Below are positions 1-13,589 of a DNA stretch of 13,589 nucleotides, in pieces. Every line of letters starts with the position of its first letter. The stretch's first letter is position 1. This DNA is from Zygophlyctis sp. KS116 (taxonomy: Eukaryota; Fungi; Chytridiomycota). The stretch covers positions 1 through 13,589 of the forward strand of contig BAAFSQ010000268.1 in the NCBI GenBank assembly GCA_054661495.1, written 5' to 3'. The notes under the pieces were generated by a model. It ran no database searches and was not told the DNA's origin. It saw only the letters and a program-made list of their open reading frames with translations. The translations under genes and the position numbers were made by a program.

Positions 1-165
1 CGTAATAGATTATCATCGGAGAAGGTAGCAAAACTCAACGCAATCAAGACAAATTCTTATGCTTTTAGAGATTATAACCTTCAGGACGTAGATGATATTG
101 ATGATGCTATTGATGAATCCAGTAATGCTGATGATTCAGATGCAACAGATGCTATAATAAGTTAA
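1..165 (+). CDS. hAT-family transposase, C-terminal fragment (end of dimerization domain plus acidic tail); 5'-partial
   Basis: Frame 1 reads RNRLSSEKVAKLNAIKTNSYAF...DVDDIDDAIDESSNADDSDATDAIIS* (TAA 163-165). RNRLxxExxxKLxxIxxN is the typical end of the hAT C-terminal dimerization domain. An Ac-like terminus follows about 100 bp downstream. Not in the ORF track. Confidence 0.8.
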   Translation, partial: RNRLSSEKVAKLNAIKTNSYAFRDYNLQDVDDIDDAIDESSNADDSDATDAIIS

Positions 166-193
166 TTAAAAGTAAAATAAATCCATTAAATGA

Positions 194-259
194 AAAACCC
201 ATAGCTGGGTTTTTGATAAAACCCAAACCCATAAAACCCAAGGCCTAGAACTGGGTTTT
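194..259. repeat. Subterminal (A)AAACCCA repeats of the hAT element, both orientations
   Basis: (A)AAACCCA at about 194, 218, 225 and 233; TGGGTTTT at about 206 and 252. Analogous to the short subterminal transposase-binding repeats of Ac. Confidence 0.75.
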
Positions 260-360
260 ATCCATCCCTGATCCTAGCAGAACGATGGATTACGTCACTT
301 ACTATCCTAGATTATTGTTTATCATTGAGTTCAACAACAAATTTACTGAGCAAACAAAAA

Positions 361-870
361 ATGGGTTGTGTAACGAGTGCCGAAAAGCGATGGATAGAGG
401 AAGGAATATTTTATGATTTATATTATCGACCTGGTATGTGCTGCTTCACTTTTGTAAACCATATGTGCATGCTAGATCATGATTTAGCATGTGTTCTAAC
501 AAGCGATCAGAATGCAGTTGTAGCATCACTTATGTATGATAAAGAATTTAGAATTACAAATCAGAAAATGCTTGCAGGGATTCGTAAAGGATCATCCAAA
601 ACTAAATTTAGTTATTATGATACATGTGTTATTCCGATTATAGAATTTACAGAAAATGAACAGGATTTAAAGGATAGACTATTGCAAGCAAGGATTGCGT
701 ATCCTGAAGCTAATGCAGTTTTAGTTCGAGGATTTGGTCTTTATGTTTGGGAGTCAGGATTATTATCAGTCCGTATGACTCAATGCTATGATCGCTTATT
801 TGCAATTGCAATCAAAATGAGATCCATGGGGATGGATCTTGCTAAAATTCACCCTGTAAATCATTACTGA
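361..870 (+). CDS. Class II aldolase/adducin-family protein, divergent homolog of methylthioribulose-1-phosphate dehydratase (MDE1/APIP-like); catalytic residues missing; probable intron 434-475
   Basis: Motifs EFRITNQKMLAGI, YYDTCVIPIIE, YPEANAVLVR.GLYVW and CYDRLFAIAIKM match APIP/Mde1. Removing GTATGT...CTAG (434-475, 42 nt, in frame) gives LYYRPDHDLACVLTSDQNAVVASL, which fits the family IYxxRPD..AVIHTHS segment. First in-frame ATG is 361, but the frame stays open back to the transposon border at 271, so the true start is uncertain. Confidence 0.75.
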   Translation: MGCVTSAEKRWIEEGIFYDLYYRPGMCCFTFVNHMCMLDHDLACVLTSDQNAVVASLMYDKEFRITNQKMLAGIRKGSSKTKFSYYDTCVIPIIEFTENEQDLKDRLLQARIAYPEANAVLVRGFGLYVWESGLLSVRMTQCYDRLFAIAIKMRSMGMDLAKIHPVNHY

Positions 871-986
871 TCTGCTGGAAGGTGAATTCACCATATTGGT
901 TAGAAATAAATTTATAGGAATTATGATTGAAGAAGAACGGGCAAAGCCGCCCATCCTTAGCTTTGTTAAAAATATATAAAGTTAAG

Positions 987-1115
987 GAAAAAGTGTGTGA
1001 GAATTGGTGCGAAAAGTGTGTGAATAGTGTCTGTTTGACAAGTGTGAGAAAAGTTTGAGTGCGAAAGGTGTGAGAAAAGTGTTTGAAAGCTGTGCGAAAG
1101 TTGCCAGAAGTGCGT
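987..1115 (+). repeat. Degenerate tandem array of about 10-11 copies of a 9-13 nt unit (GAAAAGTGTGY / GTGCGAAA / GTGTGAGAAAAG)
   Basis: Directly visible, e.g. gaaaaagtgtgt gagaattggtgc gaaaagtgtgt ... gtgtgagaaaagt ... gtgcgaaaggtgtgagaaaagt ... gtgcgaaagt. Ends about 30 bp upstream of ATG 1143. Confidence 0.75.
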
Positions 1116-1142
1116 GTTCACCCAAATTTAAATTTATCAATC

Positions 1143-2123
1143 ATGTTAAGAGCCCTCATGAATACAGGGATCTCCGAGAATACTAACACTGTTGGAGAGA
1201 CTAGTATTCAGATTGCTCAGAGAGCTCTAGAGAGGGAGAGAGCCCTTGGGGATGAGTTGACGAATCTGAGAGGACAAAGACAGGCTCTCGTTGGTCAACT
1301 TAATCTATCTCCAACAGAAGAAGAACGGGCACAGCTCACTAGTAGATTAAATGCTTTGGAAGAGGAGATCGATGTAACCTACAATTCAGCTTTTGGCGAA
1401 GTCAAGTATGACATCTTATTACTAACGAAAGGAAATTAAATAAGATTATTGAAAAGAATAATCAGATTGAACTTTCTTTAATGTTGGAGGAAATGTCTCG
1501 ATTTGAAAGAGTAGAGGTGTTATTCGAAAGTAGCACTGATTTTCCGCAACTGCCTCCCATCATAAGAACTATGAAACCCGTGCTATTTTTCTCAGAGCTT
1601 CAAGCTCTTGTAGAAAATTTATATCCAGGTTTCAATGTTGTCTTGATGAAACCTGGAACAGTGAACATGGTGGGAAGTCAGGAGGAACTATTTTTTGCTT
1701 ATCAAGACGTTTCGGAGGGGAAAGTGCTTTATTTGGAATTGAAGATCAGTAGTGCTTCCTTGAAAAGGAAAAGAAAAGCAGATGATGAAGGTGAATCTAT
1801 TCCAGAAGTCCGACATGAAGGACCGTGGTCGAACGCCGAAATTGAGTTATTCAAGATGGGTGTCGACCAATTTGGTTGGACAAAGTGGCAGAGTATTTCA
1901 GGGATAATTGGTACTCGAGATCGTCAGCAAGTACGTCAATTTGCCTCTACTCCAAAAGGTAACTAAATAATTTCTAATTTTTTAAGGTTTAAGTTTCAAG
2001 AAGACGCTTAGCATTACACAAGGATTATTGGATTTAGCAGAGGGTATGAAGATTGTAGCGCAGATATTCCAGGGAATGGTGACCGAGCATTCGGAACAGG
2101 GGGAAGACCTAGAGGACTGTTAG
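1143..2123 (+). CDS. Myb/SANT-domain protein (N-terminal coiled coil, PB1-like segment, NLS, single Myb repeat); exons 1143-1405, 1432-1958, 1987-2123; about 308 aa
   Basis: Intron 1406-1431 (26 nt, GTATGA..TACTAAC..AAG) joins ORFs 1083 and 1481 in frame. Intron 1959-1986 (28 nt, GTAACT..CTAAT..TAAG) extends the frame to TAG 2121-2123. Myb motif GPWSNAEIELFKMGVDQFGWTKWQSISGIIGTRDRQQVRQFA; basic NLS KRKRK. Confidence 0.85.
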
Positions 2124-2371
2124 TCACTGATTAGAAAAGACTGAATATATTGCATGTAAAGATATTCAAACTTGAATTAAAGTAATTTAAGTGACTTTTC
2201 CTGTAACAACCTCGTAAAAATGAAGTATTTCATCCACTTTTAAATCGACATGAAATTTGTTGTCCGAATCCTCATTCAGATTAGAGGAAGAGAAAACGAT
2301 ATCAAACGATTATCGTCTAATTCAAATCAATAGCCACCAGTGATAAGTTTCTAAATTTACAAAAAATATAT

Positions 2372-2839
2372 TTATGAATTTATAGAATCATCTGATGATT
2401 CTCCAATAGAAAATGCCATTCTAATTCCATGAATCGCTTGTGTATTTGAGATTTCCACATTTCTTTGCAAATCTAATTCATAATCTTGTTCTGTTTGATT
2501 CCAATTCAATAATGTCCGATTAGAAAGAACATTATGAGCTTCCTCGTTAAATCCACAATATGCCGCAATGATGAATGCTTCTGCACAAGTGAATGATGAT
2601 GTGAAATTCTTATTTGAGAGCAATAATCTAAAGTTTTTGGGCTTATTATTGAGAAGCCGATGCAGTTTAATACAAATGAGTTTAATATATTCTCTTGATC
2701 GTATAAACTGACAGCATCTGTAGGCAAGATCTACATTTAGATTTACAGAATTTAGAAAATGAATGCAAGATTCCAAGTCTAGCCAAGATAATAATTCTAA
2801 ATGCAATTCTGGCGGAAGCGCCCATATATTGATTTTCAT
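2372..2839 (-). CDS. F-box-like protein (N-terminal F-box, possible degenerate ankyrin-like repeat); 3' end uncertain
   Basis: MKINIWALPPELHLELLSWLDLESCIHF fits the F-box pattern (LPxELxxxIxxxL). AFIIAAYCGFNEEAHNVL resembles one ankyrin repeat. ATG 2839 is chosen because the ORF-track start (2866) overlaps the kintoun start. Confidence 0.6.
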   Translation of the reverse strand: MKINIWALPPELHLELLSWLDLESCIHFLNSVNLNVDLAYRCCQFIRSREYIKLICIKLHRLLNNKPKNFRLLLSNKNFTSSFTCAEAFIIAAYCGFNEEAHNVLSNRTLLNWNQTEQDYELDLQRNVEISNTQAIHGIRMAFSIGESSDDSINS

Positions 2840-2856
2840 TACTAGAAAGCTTGCGA

Positions 2857-4774
2857 ATGAATGCAACGACGGATATAAAGATTACTCAAGAGGAAATGCA
2901 AAGGCTCACAGAGTCATTAAAGAATGAAGAATTCAAGTCTTTATTTTTAGATTATGTCAAAGAAATTTCTGATCCGGCAAACAGGAAATTGTATGAAGAG
3001 GAGCTAAGAGCATTGGAAGCTGAACAGGGAAATGATATCACGTTTGTAAATCCAGAGCCGCATTTTGCTGTTAAAAGCAATGATGAAAATGGTCAAAAGG
3101 TATATAATAATGATTTAATCTTTGGCGTTTATTAATATTTGCTCTAGTTTAGCTATAAATGAAGCGATAGCGAAAAAGTCTAGTAAAGGAAGTAATTGGT
3201 CTATTCCATACAGTCTTGGAAAGCCTAGGGAAGATTTAGATAATGGTAATATTTTTAAATTTATTATTAGCAAACAAGGATTGTAGAGTTTTTGATGTTG
3301 TATTTCATCCAAAAACTATTGGTAAATGTACAAACGACGCTAGATTTAAAGATCTTATTATCTCTACTGCATTAGATGGGATAGAAAATCAGTTCAAGAT
3401 ACACTTAAATAGGGATTATAAACTTCCAAAATTAAAAGTAAAGGGTGTCATTCCATCTACAGTCATTAGAGTAAAAAAAAAGGAATTAAATGAAAATGAT
3501 AAAACTGAAACTACTACGGAATATCTAAAAAAGGTTCTGGAGAATCAACCAAGTATAGTTCAAAAAGAAGAGACTTTGAAAATTCCAGAATATACAATTA
3601 TTCATCAAGGGGTTATAAGTGACTATAGTGATTTTACAAACTCTAGAGAAAAGTCGGGGACAAGGCCAGATGTCTTAGTCATCAAAGTGAAATTGCCAAA
3701 AGTAGATTCGATTTCTCAAATTGAATTGGATACTTTTGAAAAATGTATAGAATTAAACGTCTCACGAATATACTCTGTAAATATACCTCTGCCATTCTCT
3801 GTGGTTCATGATAAAGGCACAGCTAAATTTGATAAAGGCATTAAAGAACTCTCTATAAGTCTTCCTGTAGTCAAACCAGCCTTGCCAAAACCAGAAAAGA
3901 TCATAATTGAGGAAATTCAAGATCTAGAGGAAGATGTTTCTGCTGCTGACATAAAAGAGGATTGTCTTGAATCTGGGAAGCAAAGTATTCAGGAAAAAGA
4001 CGGTCTCCAAAGTGTTATAACAAATGATGAAGCTGAACAGGTTGTGCAGATTAAAGTTCAAGATCAAAATACAAAATCCTTCTCAAAAGTTCCCATTTTT
4101 CATATGCGTCAAGATATAACGACCGTATCGTTTATGATACCCCTTCACATTAATGGTGATGATTCGAAAATTGAATTTCAAAGAGACTCGGTACGATTGA
4201 ATCTGGAGTCTAAAAAATAGTTTTTGTTCACTTTTTTACATGGAAAAGAAGAATATGGCTTACATGTCAAGTTTCAACAGAAAATTCATGCTGAAAACTC
4301 AAAACTAAAAATCGAAGAATCTCATGTATTTATTGTTTTGGAAAAGGAAAATCATGAAGAATGGGATTTTATTACATTTTATTCCTCAGGAATGAAATTT
4401 GACCGAGCTTTCTCTAAGATTATGTCGGACGCTGAAAAGAATTTATGGGTATTTTAAGATATGCTAATCAATAGGAAAATCCAGTAGATAGTTTAAAAAA
4501 AGCTGATGAATCAAGTCCCATCGTTATTACTCCTCAAATGGAACTTGATTCGAACACTTGTGTAAATAGCTCAGAAATAATCAATGTCTCTGACCCAGTT
4601 GATAATTCATCTTCAAACTTGAATGATAATTCAATAGTTGGCTTTCAGGATGAAATTGTAATTTCTGAGGGTCCACAATACTCTGTCGAAGTTAATGACG
4701 ATAATAATAATACAGGTCAATCAGTTCATTCGGAAATAATCGCTAATAGCTATTTATTTGAATTAGACGATTAA
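2857..4774 (+). CDS. DNAAF2: Protein kintoun / PF13, PIH1-domain axonemal dynein assembly factor 2; exons 2857-3099, 3125-3245, 3271-4190, 4221-4448, 4475-4774; about 603 aa
   Basis: N-terminal EEMQRLTESLKNEEFKSLFLDYVKEISDPANRKLYEEE; PIH1 motifs AFINICS, WSIPYSLGKPRED and VFDVVFHP; CS-domain AKFDK..KELSISLPV; C-terminal NSYLFELDD. Introns 3100-3124 (25 nt, ends TG), 3246-3270 (25), 4191-4220 (30) and 4449-4474 (26) keep one frame. Confidence 0.93.
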
Positions 4775-4808
4775 AATATGCTTATTTTATTAAATGCAGT
4801 TGATTGAC

Positions 4809-6754
4809 TTAGTTTTTAGCCTTACTATCCATTAGATCAAAAAAGGCTTCCTGTGGCAGATTAATCCCTCCGGCTACAGATTTCATTCTTTTTTTACCCT
4901 CTTTCTGACGATCTAAAAGCTTCATCTTTCGAGTTATATCGCCTCCATAGCATTTTGCAGTAATGTCCTTTCTTAGAGCTTTAATTCTATATTCTTAATT
5001 CATTTTAAGTATTACGTTTCTGTTGCAACAATCTTATTATTGACCGATGACTGTACTTTTATGTCGAAAAGCTGCCTGTCCACAACATTTTTCAATCTTG
5101 ATACCCATTCTTTAGAGATTTTTAACGATTGTGACTGATGACAAACGGAAGATAAAGAATCGACACTTTTCCCGTTCAGCAGGATATTTATTTTCACCAA
5201 TTCTGATGGCTCATATCCAGTCTCTTCGTAATCAAACCTTTTGCATTAAAACAATTAAAATTACGATGCATATCCAGACGATTTTGATTTCAAGATATCA
5301 TAAAAGTCCGTGAGAATCTCTGCTAGCGGTAGTTTGTATTTCATTATCACACGCTTTTCATCCAAAAACGAATACTCTAATTGTTCACCCCTTCTTTGAC
5401 TACAAAGATCCATCAAATTTCCTAAATACTCTGAAGGAAAAACAAGAGTTCCTAGTACGAAAGGCTCGAGAAATTCAATAATTTTTGAATGCTCTTGAAG
5501 CTCTGGAAATTCGGATGGATTTTGAATAATCTTTTCTGTACCGTCATGATATCGAATCATATATGGAACTGTGGGCATAGTGTTTATAATATTAGCCTTA
5601 TATTCTTCTTCTAAGCGCTCTCTAAACACATCCATGTGCAAAGTTCCTAGAAATCCAAGTCTAAATCCCTGTCCAAGAGAAACAGAGCTTTCTTTTTTTA
5701 CAGTTACTGACGAGTCATTTAAAGTCAGGCGATCAATCGCTTCCGTCAATTGTGGATAATCCTGAGGATTTACAGGAAATAATCCAGAAAATACCATACT
5801 TTTTGCTTGCTGGAATCCAGGGAAAGCATTTCGGTCATTTTTATCAGTTGTAGAATGAAAAAAAGTATCTCCTATGAGTGCATCGCGAGTACTCTTCATG
5901 TTTAAGACCAAATATCCAACCTGGCCTGTTCTAGTTTTTAGATCGATAAATAAATACCCCAACTCAAAGGTAGTAACTGGATCTGGATGCATGATGCCCA
6001 GGTCATGTACTTCATATGTCTGTTGATTATAATTGGAAATGATCCGATCTCCTTTCTTAACCTTTCCTTGCTTCACAGCCACTAAACAAATGACACCCTT
6101 ATATTGCTCATACCAAGTATCAAATAATAGACATTTAAAAGGCTTATTAACGTCGCCAACAGGATGCGGTATATCCAAAACCAAACGATCCAACAAACTA
6201 GCAACTCCCTGACCAGTCTTTGCCGATACTCCAAGTACTTTTGAATTAGGAATTTCAAATGCATTTTCTAATTGTTCCATTACCTTTTGTGGATCTGCAG
6301 CCGGCAAGTCAATCTTATTAAGAACAGGGAGTATCGCAAGACCTTGCGCAAAAGCCAAATAGAAGTTTGCAACAGTTTGAGCCTGAACTCCCTTTGTTGC
6401 ATCGACCAAGAATGCACATCCTTGACATGCAGCCAATGATCTACTGACCTCATAAGAGAAATCGACATGTCCCGGGGTATCAATCAAGTTTAAAAGATAT
6501 GTGGTTGAATTTACTGTATGGAACATTGTCGCTGTTTGTGCCTTGACTGTGATCCCTCTATCTCTTTCAACTTTGAGCTTATCAAGTACTTGGGAGTTTC
6601 CACCTTTTGCTATAACTCCAGTCAATTCCAAGATCCGATCAGCAAGAGTTGATTTCCCATGATCAATGTGTGCTATGATGCTAAAGTTCCTGATAAGCTC
6701 TGGGGGGAACTCTACTGATTTGCTGGAAAATGATCGCATAAACAAACGACACAT
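4809..6754 (-). CDS. GUF1: Mitochondrial translation factor GUF1 (EF-4/LepA); exons 6754-5958, 5930-5265, 5237-5016, 4986-4809; about 620 aa
   Basis: [44 protein letters not shown] and C-terminal [20 protein letters not shown] are LepA signatures. Introns 5931-5957 (27 nt), 5238-5264 (27) and 4987-5015 (29) restore GTGQVGY, GYASFDYE and ETIKALRK. Short Arg/Ser-rich N-terminus is consistent with a mitochondrial presequence. Confidence 0.97.
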
Positions 6755-6761
6755 AAAAACT

Positions 6762-8982
6762 TTATTCTATAATTATTACTTGAGGTTCAGGCTCCCAATC
6801 GATGTTCTTATGCATTTCAGATTTATATTTCTCTGGAGAGCTTACAACTAAAATATTTTTAAGATCTGATGTTCGCAGCAATGCTCTTGTACTTGTATCC
6901 GAATTTAATCTCTCGCAAAGATCATGATGAGAAAACGATTTGGTTTCTGGGCCGCGAATTAACCTAATGGTCCCATTAAAGAGTAATGATTCTTCAAAAG
7001 AATTAAATTTGGTTAATGGTATTTGCCATCTGATACCAAAATTTGGGGATAATCTTCCAACTTTTAAGTTAGAACTCCCAACTGGAGAATGAGCATGCGC
7101 CAGAGAATTCTCAATCAGTTGATTTCTAAATGAGACATTACGGCTATCAGTTTGAGAAATGTTATTTATAGCCTGACTAATTTTATGCACATAACGAGAG
7201 ACTTTTTGATTGTTTTTATAGATTGCAATAGCGGTTTCAAAATGAAATGATGCATTGGATTTCAGGAAGTTTCCAGTCAATGCTAGATCAAGTTTAGCTG
7301 TTTTCATGATCTGTAAAAGATCTTTAAGAAAATTTGAGCAAGCAAATGTGTCCGAATCCATGAAAACGATATATTCATAAGGAACAATTTCTGATAGATT
7401 TGGCAGTAAATCAATGAAATTTTGGACAGTATTATTTATCTATTAAATTTAGATTTTAGACTAAAATTACCAATATAAAGTCATCAAACATACCAGACAC
7501 TCTTGAAATAGTATCCGGGAAGAGATTATTACTTATTAAAGTGATGTCCACATCTTCCTCTGAATTTCTAACAGAAAGAACAGAGTTCAAGGTATTTTTC
7601 ATAGTGCCTTTGAATTTTTTATCATCCAAATCCAAAACCGAATAAATCAGACCAATCTTGTTTCTATTGGCATTTTTTTTAGGACCGACATCTAACATAC
7701 GTATGTGTTTTTGAGATTCCCATGATATATCAAAGCATTTCTTACCTAAAAGTTGATCACATTCTTGTTGAGAGTATGCCAGCTCAAGTGAATTGCCTAA
7801 ATTATACGCTTTGATCTGAGGATGTTTGACTTTGTCCCAAATTACTATTCTAGGCTGTCGGTTTGAGTTTATATACTCACAAACTTCTGCATTGAATATA
7901 TAACCGTGGCCTCTCATTTGAAAAAATCTCGCATGGCCAGCCATCACCAATGTATGATAATGAGAATATTTCGTTCTTGGATGCAGCTGAATTTCACTTG
8001 AAGGTCTAAAGCTACCTCCAAACAATGGTGAAAGTCTTCCCAACTTGATATTGAATCGATGATTATATATGGCTTCATTCAAAGCTGAGTACTGATTATC
8101 ATATTTTTCATTTTCTCCTAATCGACTCATAATCTGTATACAATCATCCAACAATCTAATGACATTTTGTTTATCTCTAAACATAATGACTCCTAAATCA
8201 GCGTCTCCTAGCCTAGAAAGATGTCTACTTTGACTGATGCCACTAAAGACCATATCCAAGTTTGAATTTTCAAAGAATGGTAGAATATCAGAAATAAATG
8301 AATTACAAATGATGGTATCCTGGTCAAAATAAATAGTTATTTTATACGGAGAAAGCTTCAAAGCATTTGATAAGGTGAACAAGGAATTTGCTTCAATATC
8401 ATCTGAGATTTGTTCGAACCGATCCACTACCATCCTTAGAATATTTAGCTTTCTTTCATCAATGGATGGGCCTACAAGACAAATTTTAATTTCTGGCTCT
8501 ACTTCTCTTAACTTACGAGCCTGATCATATATTTTCCTGTAATAATAATCAGAATTCATATTTGGATAAATCACAAGCAATACTCCAAACTTTTGAATCG
8601 TGCCAACTGAAGGCGATGGTAATTTATCAGACATTGAGATCTTGTCCGGACTTAATTTAATTAGATCATCAAAAGATTTAGATTTTTTAGGCTGATAACT
8701 GGTTTCCATATCAGGAGCCACCATGGTCATTGCAAACGTGATATTTATAAATGCAGCACTAGAATTCATGTAGTCTTGGATTTCATACTGGTTCGGTGCC
8801 TGCTGTTCCAGAGAACCTACCCTTAACGGTTCATTTTGAACCTGACCTAAAGTCACGACGAGCTCTTGCTCTTCAGCTGTATATGTGTGGTCTTTATTCC
8901 TTATTCTGAGTTTAATATATAGGAGTATGGCACAAAAGAAAACTAATACAAAAGAGAAAATACTTTTTTTTCTGAATTTCAT
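6762..8982 (-). CDS. Type II membrane protein with two tandem GT-A-fold (nucleotide-diphospho-sugar transferase-like) domains; exons 8982-7471, 7439-6762; about 729 aa
   Basis: Basic N-terminus plus TM (MKFRKKSIFSFVLVFFCAILLYI). Intron 7440-7470 (31 nt, GTAATT..TAATAG) joins the 508-aa and 199-aa ORFs. Two aligned DxD segments: SPYKITIYFDQDTIICNSFISDIL and VPYEYIVFMDSDTFACSNFLKDLL. CAZy family cannot be assigned by eye. Confidence 0.75.
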
Positions 8983-10404
8983 AATAAATTAGACTTTCGG
9001 ACACTTTTCTTCGTGACCTTTGATTGTGGCTGTTTCGGCCCCTCGTCAATTGATTTTTCGTGTTCTGCAATCGAGTCTTTCGGATCCATTACCAAAGTAG
9101 AGGAAGAAAGGTGATTTTGAGTCAGTCCGGATCTAGGACTTTCATTTCCTCTCATATTTAATAAATTCTGACATTGACGAATAGCATGCTCTAGAGCAGA
9201 TATTTTTTCCACCAATCTCCTGTTTTCCAATGCCAAAGCATCCGATGCTTCCTCCATATCCTTGATCCAATTCTTCTTTTTGACTCTGCATCTCGAGGCC
9301 GAAACTCTATTTCGTAGTCTTTTCAAGGTTTTGCGATCCATTTTTGCTGTGGGGATGATATTGGTGGGCAATCCGGCCTGTCGAGGCGCCTTCTTTTGCG
9401 AGCTGCAGTTCAGCTCACTACTCTGATCTATCTCCTTATGACAACCCATAGCTCCTAATCCATTAAGATTGATAAGTTTTTCAGGTGATCCAAAGTTTCC
9501 GGCAATGATGGCAGGATTTACATGGATTGCAGTATGATGGGGTCCTAAAAAGTGATGATGGCTATTTATACGTCCAGAAGAAGATTGTGACATTAAGATT
9601 GTTTGCTGTGAGATACTTTGATCACTCGAACTTCCTTGAAGTCTTTGAGATACATCATCTTGCAGAAAATCATCGAATTGATTAAACTCATAATTATTCC
9701 AATTATTCCCCTCATTATCGTTAAGGATTCCCATACTATGACCATAATTAGAGAATGACTGTTCCGCATTACCTTCGGAAGATATTTCGGTGTGCAAAAG
9801 ATCGGAATTTTGATTGCAAATATCTTTTAAACGCCTGACTGATATGTCATCAGAAACATCATGAGGAGAAGAATAGAATTTAGTGGATAAATCTAATGGG
9901 TAAATGGGCTCAGATGTATATTGAAAGCCTCCAAAGGAATATTGCCCATTTCCTCCACGATTGCTATCAAAGAATTCTGAAGAATATTCATATTGATGAT
10001 CTACTCCATTAGTCATATCTTTTGATCCGGCATAGTTTACTAAATTATCCAGATTTGATTTAGAAGTCTGTGGATGAAAGTCTTCGGAATATGAATCAGA
10101 ATTTAGATAGAATGTTTGGTCTGAATATTCATTTAGTTGTCCAGACAACTGATTGTTTACTTCTTCATCTATGTGTCAGTTTTAAAGATTGTATGGTCCC
10201 AGAATCATTGGCCGCCGATTGTGTCCTAGATCTAGGAAAATATCGGACATCAGCCCACCAATGAATCTGGGCCAATAAAACTACTAATTACCATTAATAC
10301 AAAGATCAGACGATGATGTTGGATGAATTTTCAAGTTAAAATCTTCATTATAGTTTGTTCTAATGATTAATCAGATCATACTAGATGGCTTACACAGTAT
10401 CCAT
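8979..10404 (-). CDS. bZIP transcription factor, ATF/CREB (Atf1/ATF2-like); exons 10404-10394, 10359-10292, 10168-8979; about 422 aa
   Basis: Basic region KRLRNRVSASRCRVKKKNWIKDME followed by a leucine zipper; NRxxASxCRxKKKxW is typical of Atf1/ATF2. The ORF-track start is a TTG. Splicing 10360-10393 (34 nt, GTAAGC..TTAG) and 10169-10291 (123 nt, GTAATT..CTGAC..TAG) gives MDTVTNYNEDF...CINDEEVNNQLSGQ in frame. The 5' exons are less certain than the domain call. Confidence 0.85.
10194..10274 (-). other. Long imperfect inverted repeat / RNA hairpin inside bZIP intron 2
   Basis: Outer arms (+ strand) TGGTCCCAGAATCATTGG 10194-10211 and CCAATGAATCTGGGCCA 10258-10274; inner CCGAT 10215-10219 / ATCGG 10242-10246; central perfect palindrome TCCTAGATCTAGGA 10224-10237. 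Confidence 0.8.
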
Positions 10405-10475
10405 AGTTTATTTAGTATTTTGATCGCTTTGGCCTTTAAAATTAGATAGTTTGTAGAGTTCAGAAAAGTTTTCGA

Positions 10476-10528
10476 GCTGATACGTCAGCGAAATGAATAA
10501 AAGATGGGAAGTCAAAAGACTGCGTCAC
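10476..10528 (-). promoter_or_regulatory. Two CRE-like (TGACG) sites upstream of the ATF-type bZIP gene
   Basis: Minus strand TGACGTA (10487-10481, within GCTGATACGTCAGC) and TGACGCA (10527-10521), in the 172-bp intergenic region about 80 and 120 bp upstream of ATG 10404. Confidence 0.45.
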
Positions 10529-10576
10529 TCGGACTTTTTCACGGAAATTTTAGACGAAACGCAGAAAAGAAAAAAA

Positions 10577-12060
10577 TCAACGATCATTATTAATAAGACT
10601 TGATGATGCTTCAGCAGAATAAATCATTTCGGGGATTGAAATTTTAGTAGAGCCTCGCCTATTGAGTAAACTTCCCCGGAAGGGATTATAGCTAGAGTCA
10701 AAATCGCGATTCCCTCCGGCAAACGATTCACTTATTGGATCCTCTTTTCCATCTAAAGAATCTAGATCTATCAGCTTTTCATACATTTGAGATTGCTCGG
10801 GGCTTGATTTAGATGCCCCAAGTACTGGTAAACAAGTGTGTTTAGCAGATGTGGGCGACAGAAACACTGGCGTGGTTTGTAACAGAGGAGGCAAAGGTGA
10901 ATTTACAGATTCTAAATCACTCTCCATCATTAAATTAGACTGGAAAAGTTCTGGATCTTGCAAAACTAATGGAACTGCACCACCCAAACACTTGAGTGGG
11001 AAATATGCACCCCTACCATTTCTAAGTGATATTCCTTCGGCCCAGCCATCTTCAAAAGCTCTATATAAAGTTACTGTATCTCCTATGGATAAGCTCATTT
11101 CATCAGATTTGGCTCCATTAAATTCATTTCTGACAGGGAAATATCTTTCACCATTTTTCATAATGATTTTATCTGCAATTTTCTCTGCTCTTGATTCATA
11201 AATTGGCCTATTTTCTGGTAAAGATTCAAAACGATTGTTGAATTGTCCCCGGTTTTGATTAGATCCAGTAACAGTCACCCTTCCGACCCTTTGAGATATC
11301 GCCCGACGTTCAGCTCTAACCTTGTCTGACTTACCATATTTATGAGCAAAAAGTAAGCATAAACAAATCATCAATGATATCGCCATTACAACTGCAGCAA
11401 TACTCCACATAATAATAATTGCTGATGAAATATCAGAATGATCTAATTGAATTTCATCATACAATACACTAGAAGATTTTGAAGTTTGACTTATTGTTGA
11501 CTGCAATGCTTTTTGCGACATCTTTGTCATTGATTCCACTTTACTTGTTGTACTGGTAGGAACAGATGTTATAGAAGATTTTAAATCTAACAGTTTAATC
11601 TAAACAACTAACCACTACATAAGCCCAAATCATTGATCCCAATACAACCAGTTAGAGGCTTACTTTCAATACATAATTTGGACATTGGTCCAAACTTGCA
11701 TGTGCTGAGAGAAGCTAGAGATGATAAATTAACAATTCCTGAAATTCCAGTATTTGATACATCTAGATATGATATAGAGCTTGGTAATTTTGGTAGATTC
11801 CCGATAAGTCCTGGATTGTCTGATATATTGATTTCTACAACATTAGAAAACACAAATAGAGATGCAGGAAGAGATCCTTTCAAATTATGATTAGATAAGT
11901 TGCTTTTTATAATTTCTATTTTATCTTACATCTCAATCACCTTTCGGTTCAGATCGCAAATGATTGGCCCAGTGCAGCATTCGCCTTCAACAGTTGATCC
12001 AAAAGCAGTCGATGATCTTAACTGATTAGAAATACTTAATAGCTGAGCACATTCATTCAT
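10577..12060 (-). CDS. Receptor-like protein: Cys-capped plant-type LRR ectodomain, Ser/Thr-rich stalk, TM helix, cytoplasmic SH3; exons 12060-11930, 11902-11613, 11586-10577; about 476 aa
   Basis: Introns 11903-11929 (27 nt) and 11587-11612 (26 nt) join MNECAQLL...ECCTGPIICDLNRKVIEINLSNHNLKGSLP, the LRRs (INISDNPGLIGNLP, LDVSNTGISG), TM (AIIIMWSIAAVVMAISLMICLCLLF) and SH3 (FNGAKSDEMSLSIGDTV...DGWAEG...GAYFP). Confidence 0.88.
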
Positions 12061-12232
12061 CAGGAAAATGAAATCTGTTGAAACAGTCAAAATTTTACGT
12101 TTTCGACAACGAAACGGCTTTGGAGTTTACACAAGCAGTAGCATTTAATATTGTAAACAAAATATCGCAGAATCTGATCGAAATTAATCTAGGACGGCGC
12201 TCTGTCAACATTTTCTCATTAAAACTAAAAAA

Positions 12233-13121
12233 ATGTCAAAAAAGCTCTGGGTTGCATATGAGGCGCTTGCAAAGAGATTTGGTCCTACAAGAGTCTCTGT
12301 TGATGGATGCTTCGGTGTGGATGACTTTAAAGGTAACATTATGTATTAGCTTATTTATAGAAGAAATCAAGAAGAAGTTTGAAATCACTGGGCCTGCATC
12401 TCAACTGAGTCTCTTCCAACCAGATGGAACTACTGAAATTAGAGCCGGAGACTCTCCTGCTGATTACTTGGAAGGAAAATCTAGTGGAAATGCGCTCATT
12501 GTTAAACATGTGGTCTCCTCTCAAGTCTCCAATCTTCAAAACAGTTCTTCCTCAAAAGCTGCCCTGATTTTGCAATCCACCATGACGACTGAGGAAAAAG
12601 AATCTATCTTGAAGGATATTTTTGAAGTAGAATCTAAAGATCTAGTACTACAAGCCAAAGATCTAGTACTACAAGCCAATGATGAGTTACTTGAAGCATT
12701 GAAAGAGAATATTAAACGCATCGAAGCAGAGCGTGATTTTTTAAAGGGAGCGCTTGATGCTCGTCATATTTTTGAAACTTACGAATTACGATTCCTGAAC
12801 CCGTATCCAAAAGCCGCAATACTTACAAGAGCGGAAAAGTGGAAGAAGCATCTTGTATTGAAACCAAAAATCCGGGAAAAGCTTGAAGAATGTGACCAAA
12901 AAATACTTTGGCATGATAAAGCGGCGGAAATTTATGACGAGTTAAGCAGAAGCAGTCATCAACGAGCAATAGACATTGGAAACGGAAAGTATATCGTGGT
13001 GATTGAAAAATCACTTCCTAAAACTTCGTATTGGTTTTTAAAGGTGCTAGCTAACGAACTGTATGGGGAAAATGTTTCAGCTCAAAGAGATATATTCGGT
13101 GAACCAGCATCTTCTGTATAA
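12233..13121 (+). CDS. Crinkler (CRN)-like protein: ubiquitin-like N-terminal header, coiled coil, uncharacterised C-terminal domain; exons 12233-12332, 12361-13121; about 286 aa
   Basis: Intron 12333-12360 (28 nt, GTAACA..TTATAG) gives MSKKLWVAYEALAKRFGPTRVSVDGCFGVDDFKEEIKKKFEITGPASQLSLFQPDG...NALIVK, resembling the VDDFKxxIKxK...LxL...LIV pattern of CR-type ubiquitin-like headers. ATG sits in an A-rich context. The ORF-track N-terminus (12078-12360) is probably not real. Confidence 0.7.
12636..12677 (+). repeat. Perfect 21-bp tandem duplication encoding KDLVLQA x2
   Basis: AAAGATCTAGTACTACAAGCC at 12636-12656 and 12657-12677. Confidence 0.95.
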
Positions 13122-13589
13122 CTGTCAAACGAAATGTTGAGTTATATCAGAATCAACCCCGATTATTATTATCAAGAAGTTTTACAATGTGAGTTTTGAA
13201 AATGTATGGTTTGCTTTCTGATGACTGATTAGTGCTTTATTGTTCAATAAATCGCTTTTTCTACGAGTCTGAGACCTGACATTAAAATCAGTTTTGACGG
13301 TTGTAAATCAACGCTTTAAGCTATTTGGTAAACGATTCTAACCATTCCTTAAAAATGTGTGTTTTTTACGTTGGCCTTGCGTTTTTTGCAACGAAATGGC
13401 TTTCGAGATTACATACATCACCAGATTTATTCTTTTTTGGTCTATAGTCTTAAACTTATTTTTGATGTATTCAGTTACCTATGGGATTCAGGACTCTTAT
13501 CATTATACTAGGCATGCGTCGATTGCACCGCTAGGTACTAGCAAGCCAAAAAATATTTTTGAACATGGAAGAATTCATAATCATCTTTG

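Follow-up and report, generated by a model that had tools for sequence, protein, structure and literature searches.

Overlapping transcription of densely packed genes is described in the microsporidian Encephalitozoon cuniculi (PMC2803860), read-through polycistrons in the Agaricomycetes (PMC4503453), reinitiation at stop-start overlaps in fungal viruses (PMC10275272) and nuclear bicistrons in green algae (PMC11291117). Here we compare with these systems a run of three co-directional genes, coding for a bZIP transcription factor, a glycosyltransferase and the mitochondrial GUF1/EF4 protein, in a 13,589-nucleotide (nt) stretch of the chytrid Zygophlyctis sp. KS116 (contig BAAFSQ010000268.1, positions 1 to 13,589; hereafter the window). 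We suggest that the block is real and conserved in order, and that it is most likely a product of genome compaction with nested signals. With a probability of about 0.7 we regard its members as three ordinary, separately initiated RNA polymerase II genes, whose transcription units are nested and overlap. The genes and their two junctions are listed below.

8979 to 10404, minus strand: bZIP transcription factor gene, 422 amino acids; exons 10404-10394, 10359-10292 and 10168-8979; introns of 34 and 123 nt.
6762 to 8982, minus strand: glycosyltransferase gene, 729 amino acids; exons 8982-7471 and 7439-6762; intron of 31 nt.
4809 to 6754, minus strand: mitochondrial GUF1/EF4 gene, 620 amino acids; exons 6754-5958, 5930-5265, 5237-5016 and 4986-4809.
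8979 to 8982, minus strand: junction 1, the ATGA in which the bZIP stop lies over the glycosyltransferase start (from model coordinates and the states in relatives).
6754 to 6766, minus strand: junction 2, an AATAAA (6766-6761) fused to the glycosyltransferase stop, the 7-nt spacer and the GUF1 ATG at 6754.

At junction 1 the glycosyltransferase ATG (8982-8980) and the bZIP TGA (8981-8979) share the ATGA at 8982-8979, which corresponds to a spacing of -4 nt. At junction 2 the glycosyltransferase stop TAA (6764-6762) is followed after 7 nt by the first GUF1 ATG (6754) and after 22 nt by the second one (6739). These coordinates reproduce exactly those of an earlier, sequence-only reading of the window. 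Its claim that all three genes have spliceosomal introns is also borne out: all introns are GT-AG, the spliced models translate with zero internal stops, and bZIP exons 1-2 with both introns preserve the reading frame in relatives. The introns of the block are 27-34 nt each (27, 27 and 29 nt in GUF1), except for the one of 123 nt. The GUF1 gene is followed by an AATAAA at 4791.

The block is similar to E. cuniculi in the very short spacers and, presumably, untranslated regions (UTRs), in the AAUAAA near the stop, in the short word near starts and in the apparent displacement of signals into neighbouring genes (PMC2803860). However, the host of the block is an intron-rich chytrid which carries a flagellar-assembly gene, and the word is a different one (TCCGA). 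Unlike in E. cuniculi, where overlaps between coding sequences (CDSs) are rare after re-annotation (PMC2803860), the CDSs of the block themselves overlap; the block is known here from sequence alone. We suggest that it most likely works like microsporidian overlapping transcription, possibly together with read-through of the Agaricomycete type.

Protein searches and contig look-ups yielded six related loci (L023, L025, L026, L029, L033 and L030, the latter by the N-terminus only), in all of which the bZIP gene is followed by the glycosyltransferase gene. GUF1 comes next in three of them (L023, L026 and L029); in L025 the glycosyltransferase frame reads on to the contig end. The bZIP-glycosyltransferase order persists down to 22-29% glycosyltransferase identity. 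It is not shared by the named chytrids, GUF1 of Spizellomyces and Globomyces having other neighbours, and a metagenome search for related loci found none. Junction 1 is -4 in the window and L023, -1 (TAATG) in L025 and -1 (TGATG) in L029, and the genes are separated by +27 nt in L033, +181 nt in L026 and +180 nt in L030. Junction 2 is +7 in the window and L023, -17 in L026 and +62 (or +7 in an alternative frame) in L029. The gene order is thus old, the spacing is labile and the exact overlap is dispensable. Hence, of the conservation of order and overlap that the sequence-only reading proposed to check, the order holds in six loci for bZIP and glycosyltransferase and in three for GUF1, but the overlap at junction 1 does not. 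As relatives do without the exact overlap, we consider it probable that every gene carries start and stop signals of its own within its neighbour, and that the run is not an operon of the bacterial kind.

The ATGA itself looks derived, because the bZIP stop of the old frame persists 6 nt before the glycosyltransferase ATG. The bZIP C-terminus reads KKKCPKx in three lineages and KKSVRKSNLL in the lineage of the window. We suggest that a lineage-specific 1-nt deletion moved the end of bZIP away from the frame that encodes KKKCPK, so that bZIP now terminates at the TGA within ATG-A, and that the ATGA would be a by-product of this frameshift. A -1 ribosomal frameshift at junction 1 was considered separately and rejected by inspection, as an in-frame TAA lies two codons before the glycosyltransferase ATG and there is no slippery heptamer.

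The same junctions bear on a different explanation, in which a single polycistronic mRNA is made from the bZIP promoter and the glycosyltransferase (and GUF1) is translated by termination-reinitiation at AUGA/UAAUG, as in fungal viruses. The block shares AUGA/UAAUG stop-start overlaps with the viral termination upstream ribosome-binding sites (TURBS), such as AUGA in HvV190S and UAAUG in CHV1 (PMC10275272), and both overlaps are known as reinitiation sites (PMC10275272; PMC2699510). Three exact overlap kinds (ATGA, TAATG and TGATG) occur at junction 1, three loci have junction 2 at spacings between -17 and +7 nt, the order is kept at low glycosyltransferase identity with other GUF1 neighbours in Spizellomyces and Globomyces, and in L025 and L029 the bZIP stop is not followed by a poly(A) word. 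However, the overlap is absent both from a close relative (+27) and from distant ones (+180 and +181). Viral reinitiation at AUGA/UAAUG depends on an upstream RNA element (PMC10275272), but junction 1 has neither a stable structure (z-scores +0.37 and +1.14, pseudoknots not modelled) nor an upstream UGGGA; one UGGGA lies 46 nt upstream of junction 2. Unlike the viral cases, the block consists of nuclear spliced genes. Moreover, the glycosyltransferase stop carries a poly(A) word, ATGA is not in excess among the TGA stops of the genome sample described below, the genome encodes UPF1 and two SUI1-domain proteins, yeast normally does not translate bicistrons (PMC11952965), and the three proteins have no evident common pathway. 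We therefore consider a polycistron of this kind unlikely. It is similarly doubtful that the lineage translates downstream ORFs (open reading frames) of spliced nuclear mRNAs by stop-coupled reinitiation at AUGA or UAAUG junctions, with bZIP, glycosyltransferase and possibly GUF1 being a true coupled operon beside any nested promoters. If reinitiation did operate, the block would be a rare example, among cellular genes, of coupled translation that follows long ORFs. A search for Pre-PUA (MCT-1/eIF2D) in the incomplete, intron-split genome gave no match, with three matches for PUA, and synonymous conservation along bZIP shows no trend at 50-codon resolution.

Separate initiation, which we prefer, places the start signal of the glycosyltransferase within bZIP. 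The following element is found there.

8996 to 9006, minus strand: AAGTGTCCGAA word in the last bZIP codons, a candidate nested promoter or 5'-end element of the glycosyltransferase gene.

The TCCGA of AAGTGTCCGAA is at 9001-8997, at -19 from the glycosyltransferase ATG. AAGTGTCCGAA is invariant in five loci, across two bZIP reading frames, and persists through the frameshift. TCCGA lies 12-20 nt before the glycosyltransferase ATG in six of the seven loci, in two bZIP frames and once, in L026 (12 nt before the ATG), in intergenic DNA; the background is 1.2% of 30-nt CDS windows. For comparison with other genes a self-trained gene finder was run on 213 kb, about 1.6% of the genome; it tends to merge tight neighbours. 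TCCGA is one of the top two 5-mers within 100 nt before 94 other starts (17 versus 5.0 expected, p 1e-5). The word has a sense bias and occurs within 60 nt before 5/42 tandem and 5/49 divergent genes. This bias, and the equal frequency before divergent and tandem genes, are the behaviour of a promoter or 5'-end element, and we infer that this is the function of TCCGA, rather than that of a reinitiation signal. In the whole genome GTCCGAAAATG is present 36 times; its backwards control is present once and the AGT swap 16 times. With a start-associated word inside the bZIP tail, the view of the sequence-only reading that promoter-like DNA is present only upstream of bZIP is overstated. The 27-nt bZIP-glycosyltransferase spacer of L033 (L033:1910-1936) contains additional TCCGA and TCGGA copies, which resemble a local motif duplication.

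The other end of the glycosyltransferase gene also carries a genome-typical word, which would imply cleavage in the downstream ORF. AATAAA is the top word after stops (19/93 versus 3.9 expected); it overlaps the glycosyltransferase stop in the window and L023, and in L026 the second-ranked word, AATACA, is on the stop. Spacers of -4 and +7 nt are too short for a promoter plus a terminator; the earlier statement that neither a poly(A) site nor a promoter would fit nevertheless goes too far, as the AATAAA occupies the stop itself. The bZIP gene has the following candidate.

8893 to 8898, minus strand: AATAAA, a weakly supported candidate poly(A) signal of bZIP, 80 nt past its stop, within glycosyltransferase coding DNA.

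This AATAAA is retained only in L023 and is missing in L025 and L029. As the candidate is not conserved, read-through transcripts of bZIP are possible. This makes the block similar to the read-through polycistrons of Agaricomycetes, with which it shares the tandem fungal genes, the conserved order and, possibly for bZIP, a weak terminator after the first ORF (PMC4503453). However, those polycistrons were demonstrated with long reads and their genes are also transcribed independently, whereas our case is made from sequence only and the glycosyltransferase has a clear poly(A) word. Short A-rich or U-rich leaders and the poly(A) word just ahead of the GUF1 ATG would also suit a long precursor from which trans-splicing or internal cleavage makes monocistronic mRNAs, like those of nematode operons. 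This is highly improbable, although no search aimed at spliced-leader RNA was made: the 7-nt GUF1 spacer has no AG acceptor, and from a single molecule two overlapping ORFs cannot both come out intact.

The tight spacing is a property of the whole genome, which comprises 12.73 Mb in 1175 contigs. In the 213-kb sample the genic span is about 92%, and 477 introns are predicted with a median of 27 nt, about 4.6 per predicted gene. Tandem gaps run from -1, 1, 5, 8, 10, 22, 23, 28, 33 and 35 nt upward, with a median of 87 nt (45 pairs), and the junction spacing of the block is the short tail of this continuum. Several genes at tight gaps have Pfam support, e.g. COG4 with TAATG and NMD3 with a 1-nt gap. 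The ATGA count that the sequence-only reading wanted for the whole genome was made on the sample and gives no excess: ATGA is found at 5/22 TGA stops, with about 7 expected from base composition, and a stop followed by TG at 6/94. Divergent starts elsewhere in the genome are 35 (ICln/flavoprotein), 37 (Tom22/AAA) and 11 nt apart, and in each pair Pfam supports at least one of the two genes. Within the window the divergent ATGs of PIH1/kintoun (plus strand) and an F-box-like ORF (minus strand) are 17 nt apart (2839-2857); the spacing is the same in L023, and the two genes are adjacent also in L029. Convergent CDSs overlap or almost touch. Divergent starts at 11-37 nt cannot be explained by polycistrony, so this genome must in any case have tiny UTRs or nested signals. 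Hence, one of the two options offered earlier, nested promoters and poly(A) sites, is favored by these starts, by the TCCGA in the bZIP tail and by AATAAA/AATACA on the glycosyltransferase stop in three loci; the other, polycistronic termination-reinitiation, is disfavored by the separated genes of relatives, by the bare junction 1 and by the ATGA count.

Hence, for separately initiated units we suggest the following course of events. Transcription of the glycosyltransferase would start in the last bZIP codons near TCCGA, giving a very short 5' UTR, and its mRNA would be cleaved about 15-30 nt past the stop-borne AATAAA, within GUF1 coding DNA. GUF1 would start from a site within the 3' end of the glycosyltransferase gene. 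The bZIP transcripts would finish somewhere within the glycosyltransferase gene, and some may reach its poly(A) site, with the glycosyltransferase left untranslated. A block whose signals are buried in neighbouring genes would not easily be broken up, which we propose as the reason for its conserved order.

Several points weigh against this mechanism. L030 is without the TCCGA word, and TCCGA, a candidate signal only, precedes only about 18% of starts. No TCCGA is present within 100 nt of the GUF1 ATG, and a genome-typical start word in the upstream ORF was not found for this gene. Within 200 nt after the bZIP stop there is no AATAAA-like word in L025 or L029. The exact stop-start overlap at junction 1 is seen in four of the seven loci. 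The genome statistics come from about 200 kb, 1.6% of the genome, annotated by a self-trained finder that merges tight neighbours.

Such merging happened at junction 1 itself, where the gene finder chose a 23-nt intron (8994-8972) that removes the ATGA. bZIP and glycosyltransferase would then be one gene for a bZIP-transmembrane-lumenal protein of ATF6/CREB3-like topology, perhaps as a minor isoform. An in-frame GT-AG is present in the window, L023 and L025 (26 nt). However, the donor is at the 0.8th percentile, just 6/477 predicted introns are 23 nt or shorter, the donors are non-homologous between lineages, and such a GT-AG appears in 28% of synthetic junctions. L029 has no in-frame GT-AG because of a synonymous AGA to CGA change, with MKFRKK retained, and a stand-alone bZIP homologue in Boothiomyces stops after the zipper with no adjoining glycosyltransferase. 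We thus judge the GT-AG at 8972 to 8994 (minus strand) to be no real intron and the fusion to be very unlikely. Gene finders will join such neighbours via false short introns.

Green-algal bicistrons, which are translated by leaky scanning, resemble the block in being nuclear and in having ORFs that overlap or are separated by tiny spacers, and some have overlapping stop and start codons (PMC11291117). Unlike them, the block has long, AUG-rich upstream ORFs: before the next start is reached there are 34 AUGs within the bZIP CDS, 22 of which have a purine at -3, and 49 within that of the glycosyltransferase, while the upstream ORFs of the algae show a bias against upstream AUGs. These counts contradict leaky scanning, which we regard as the least credible of the explanations.

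If the genes are indeed separately initiated, microsporidian-style overlapping transcription reaches an intron-rich chytrid, TCCGA is a testable start-associated word, and the series -4, -1, +27 and +180 nt represents an ORF approaching the promoter of its neighbour.

The encoded proteins are as follows. The bZIP protein matches Pfam bZIP_1 (E 2.7e-8), and we take its basic region to be ATF/Jun-like. GUF1 contains a G domain (Pfam GTP_EFTU, E 1e-51) and EF-G-like domains and has GUF1 proteins as its best matches. The best named ones are from chytrids (62-65%). In a quick-method tree with no Rozella or aphelid rows the window groups with the environmental locus L026 (support 99) within Chytridiomycota (97), the lineage being placed weakly beside Rhizophydiales (81). 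The glycosyltransferase is a type II membrane protein with an N-terminal hydrophobic signal anchor, present in all relatives, and two tandem GT-A-fold domains. Its first domain (predicted model, predicted local distance difference test score 62) gives Foldseek matches to glycogenin, GtrB and Mnt2 (E 2e-7 to 4e-6). The protein has DQD and DSD motifs in the window, which are degenerate in some L026 repeats; Pfam matches are under the cut-off, and a PDB sequence search with the glycosyltransferase profile gave no match. The number of domains differs, the protein of the window having two and that of L026 four (L026:2238-6993), and in L025 the protein has a C-terminal tail of short repeats (L025:12190-12397).

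Further features lie at the 5' end of bZIP.

10577 to 12060, minus strand: gene of an SH3-domain membrane protein, co-directional, 5' of bZIP (Pfam SH3_9 and gene model).
10480 to 10550, minus strand: conserved non-coding block 5' of bZIP, with TCCGA at 10533-10529, CRE-like (cAMP response element) TGACG at 10527 and 10487, and the TTCCCATC word.
10169 to 10291, minus strand: bZIP intron 2 with a long hairpin, 123 nt versus the 27-nt genome median, z -5.5.

The SH3-domain gene, 172 nt before the bZIP ATG, is the fourth member of the conserved block; it is 5' of bZIP in L023, L025, L029, L030, L031 and L033, and in L026 by a resembling C-terminus only. The non-coding block aligns with L023, L025 and L026 and is present also in L029, L033 and L030. 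Autoregulation of bZIP through the two CRE-like words of this block is possible; ACGTCA, too, is enriched in front of starts in the 200-kb sample. In six loci bZIP intron 2 measures 108-156 nt, and it keeps a long hairpin throughout despite sequence divergence (z -2.5 to -5.6 in five relatives), with weak covariation in a MAFFT alignment and no Rfam match. We suggest the hairpin as a candidate splicing-control element. HAC1-type splicing of this intron was rejected by inspection, as it has ordinary GT-AG ends and lies upstream of the bZIP domain. In bZIP intron 1 (10360-10393, minus strand) the 3' 21 nt are identical in L025, unlike other introns; they include ATG-ATC-TGA, which is lost in L029.

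Last but not least, synteny with the 96%-identical L023 (window 1-2334; L023:9952-14826) stops at window position 2334, past which L023 and L029 go on with an RNA polymerase subunit and rhomboid; window 1-2334 is possibly a contig rearrangement or misassembly. PIH1/kintoun has an apparent GT-TG intron at 3100-3124 (plus strand), and a 21-nt direct repeat is seen by eye at 12640-12684, in the ORF at 12078-13121.

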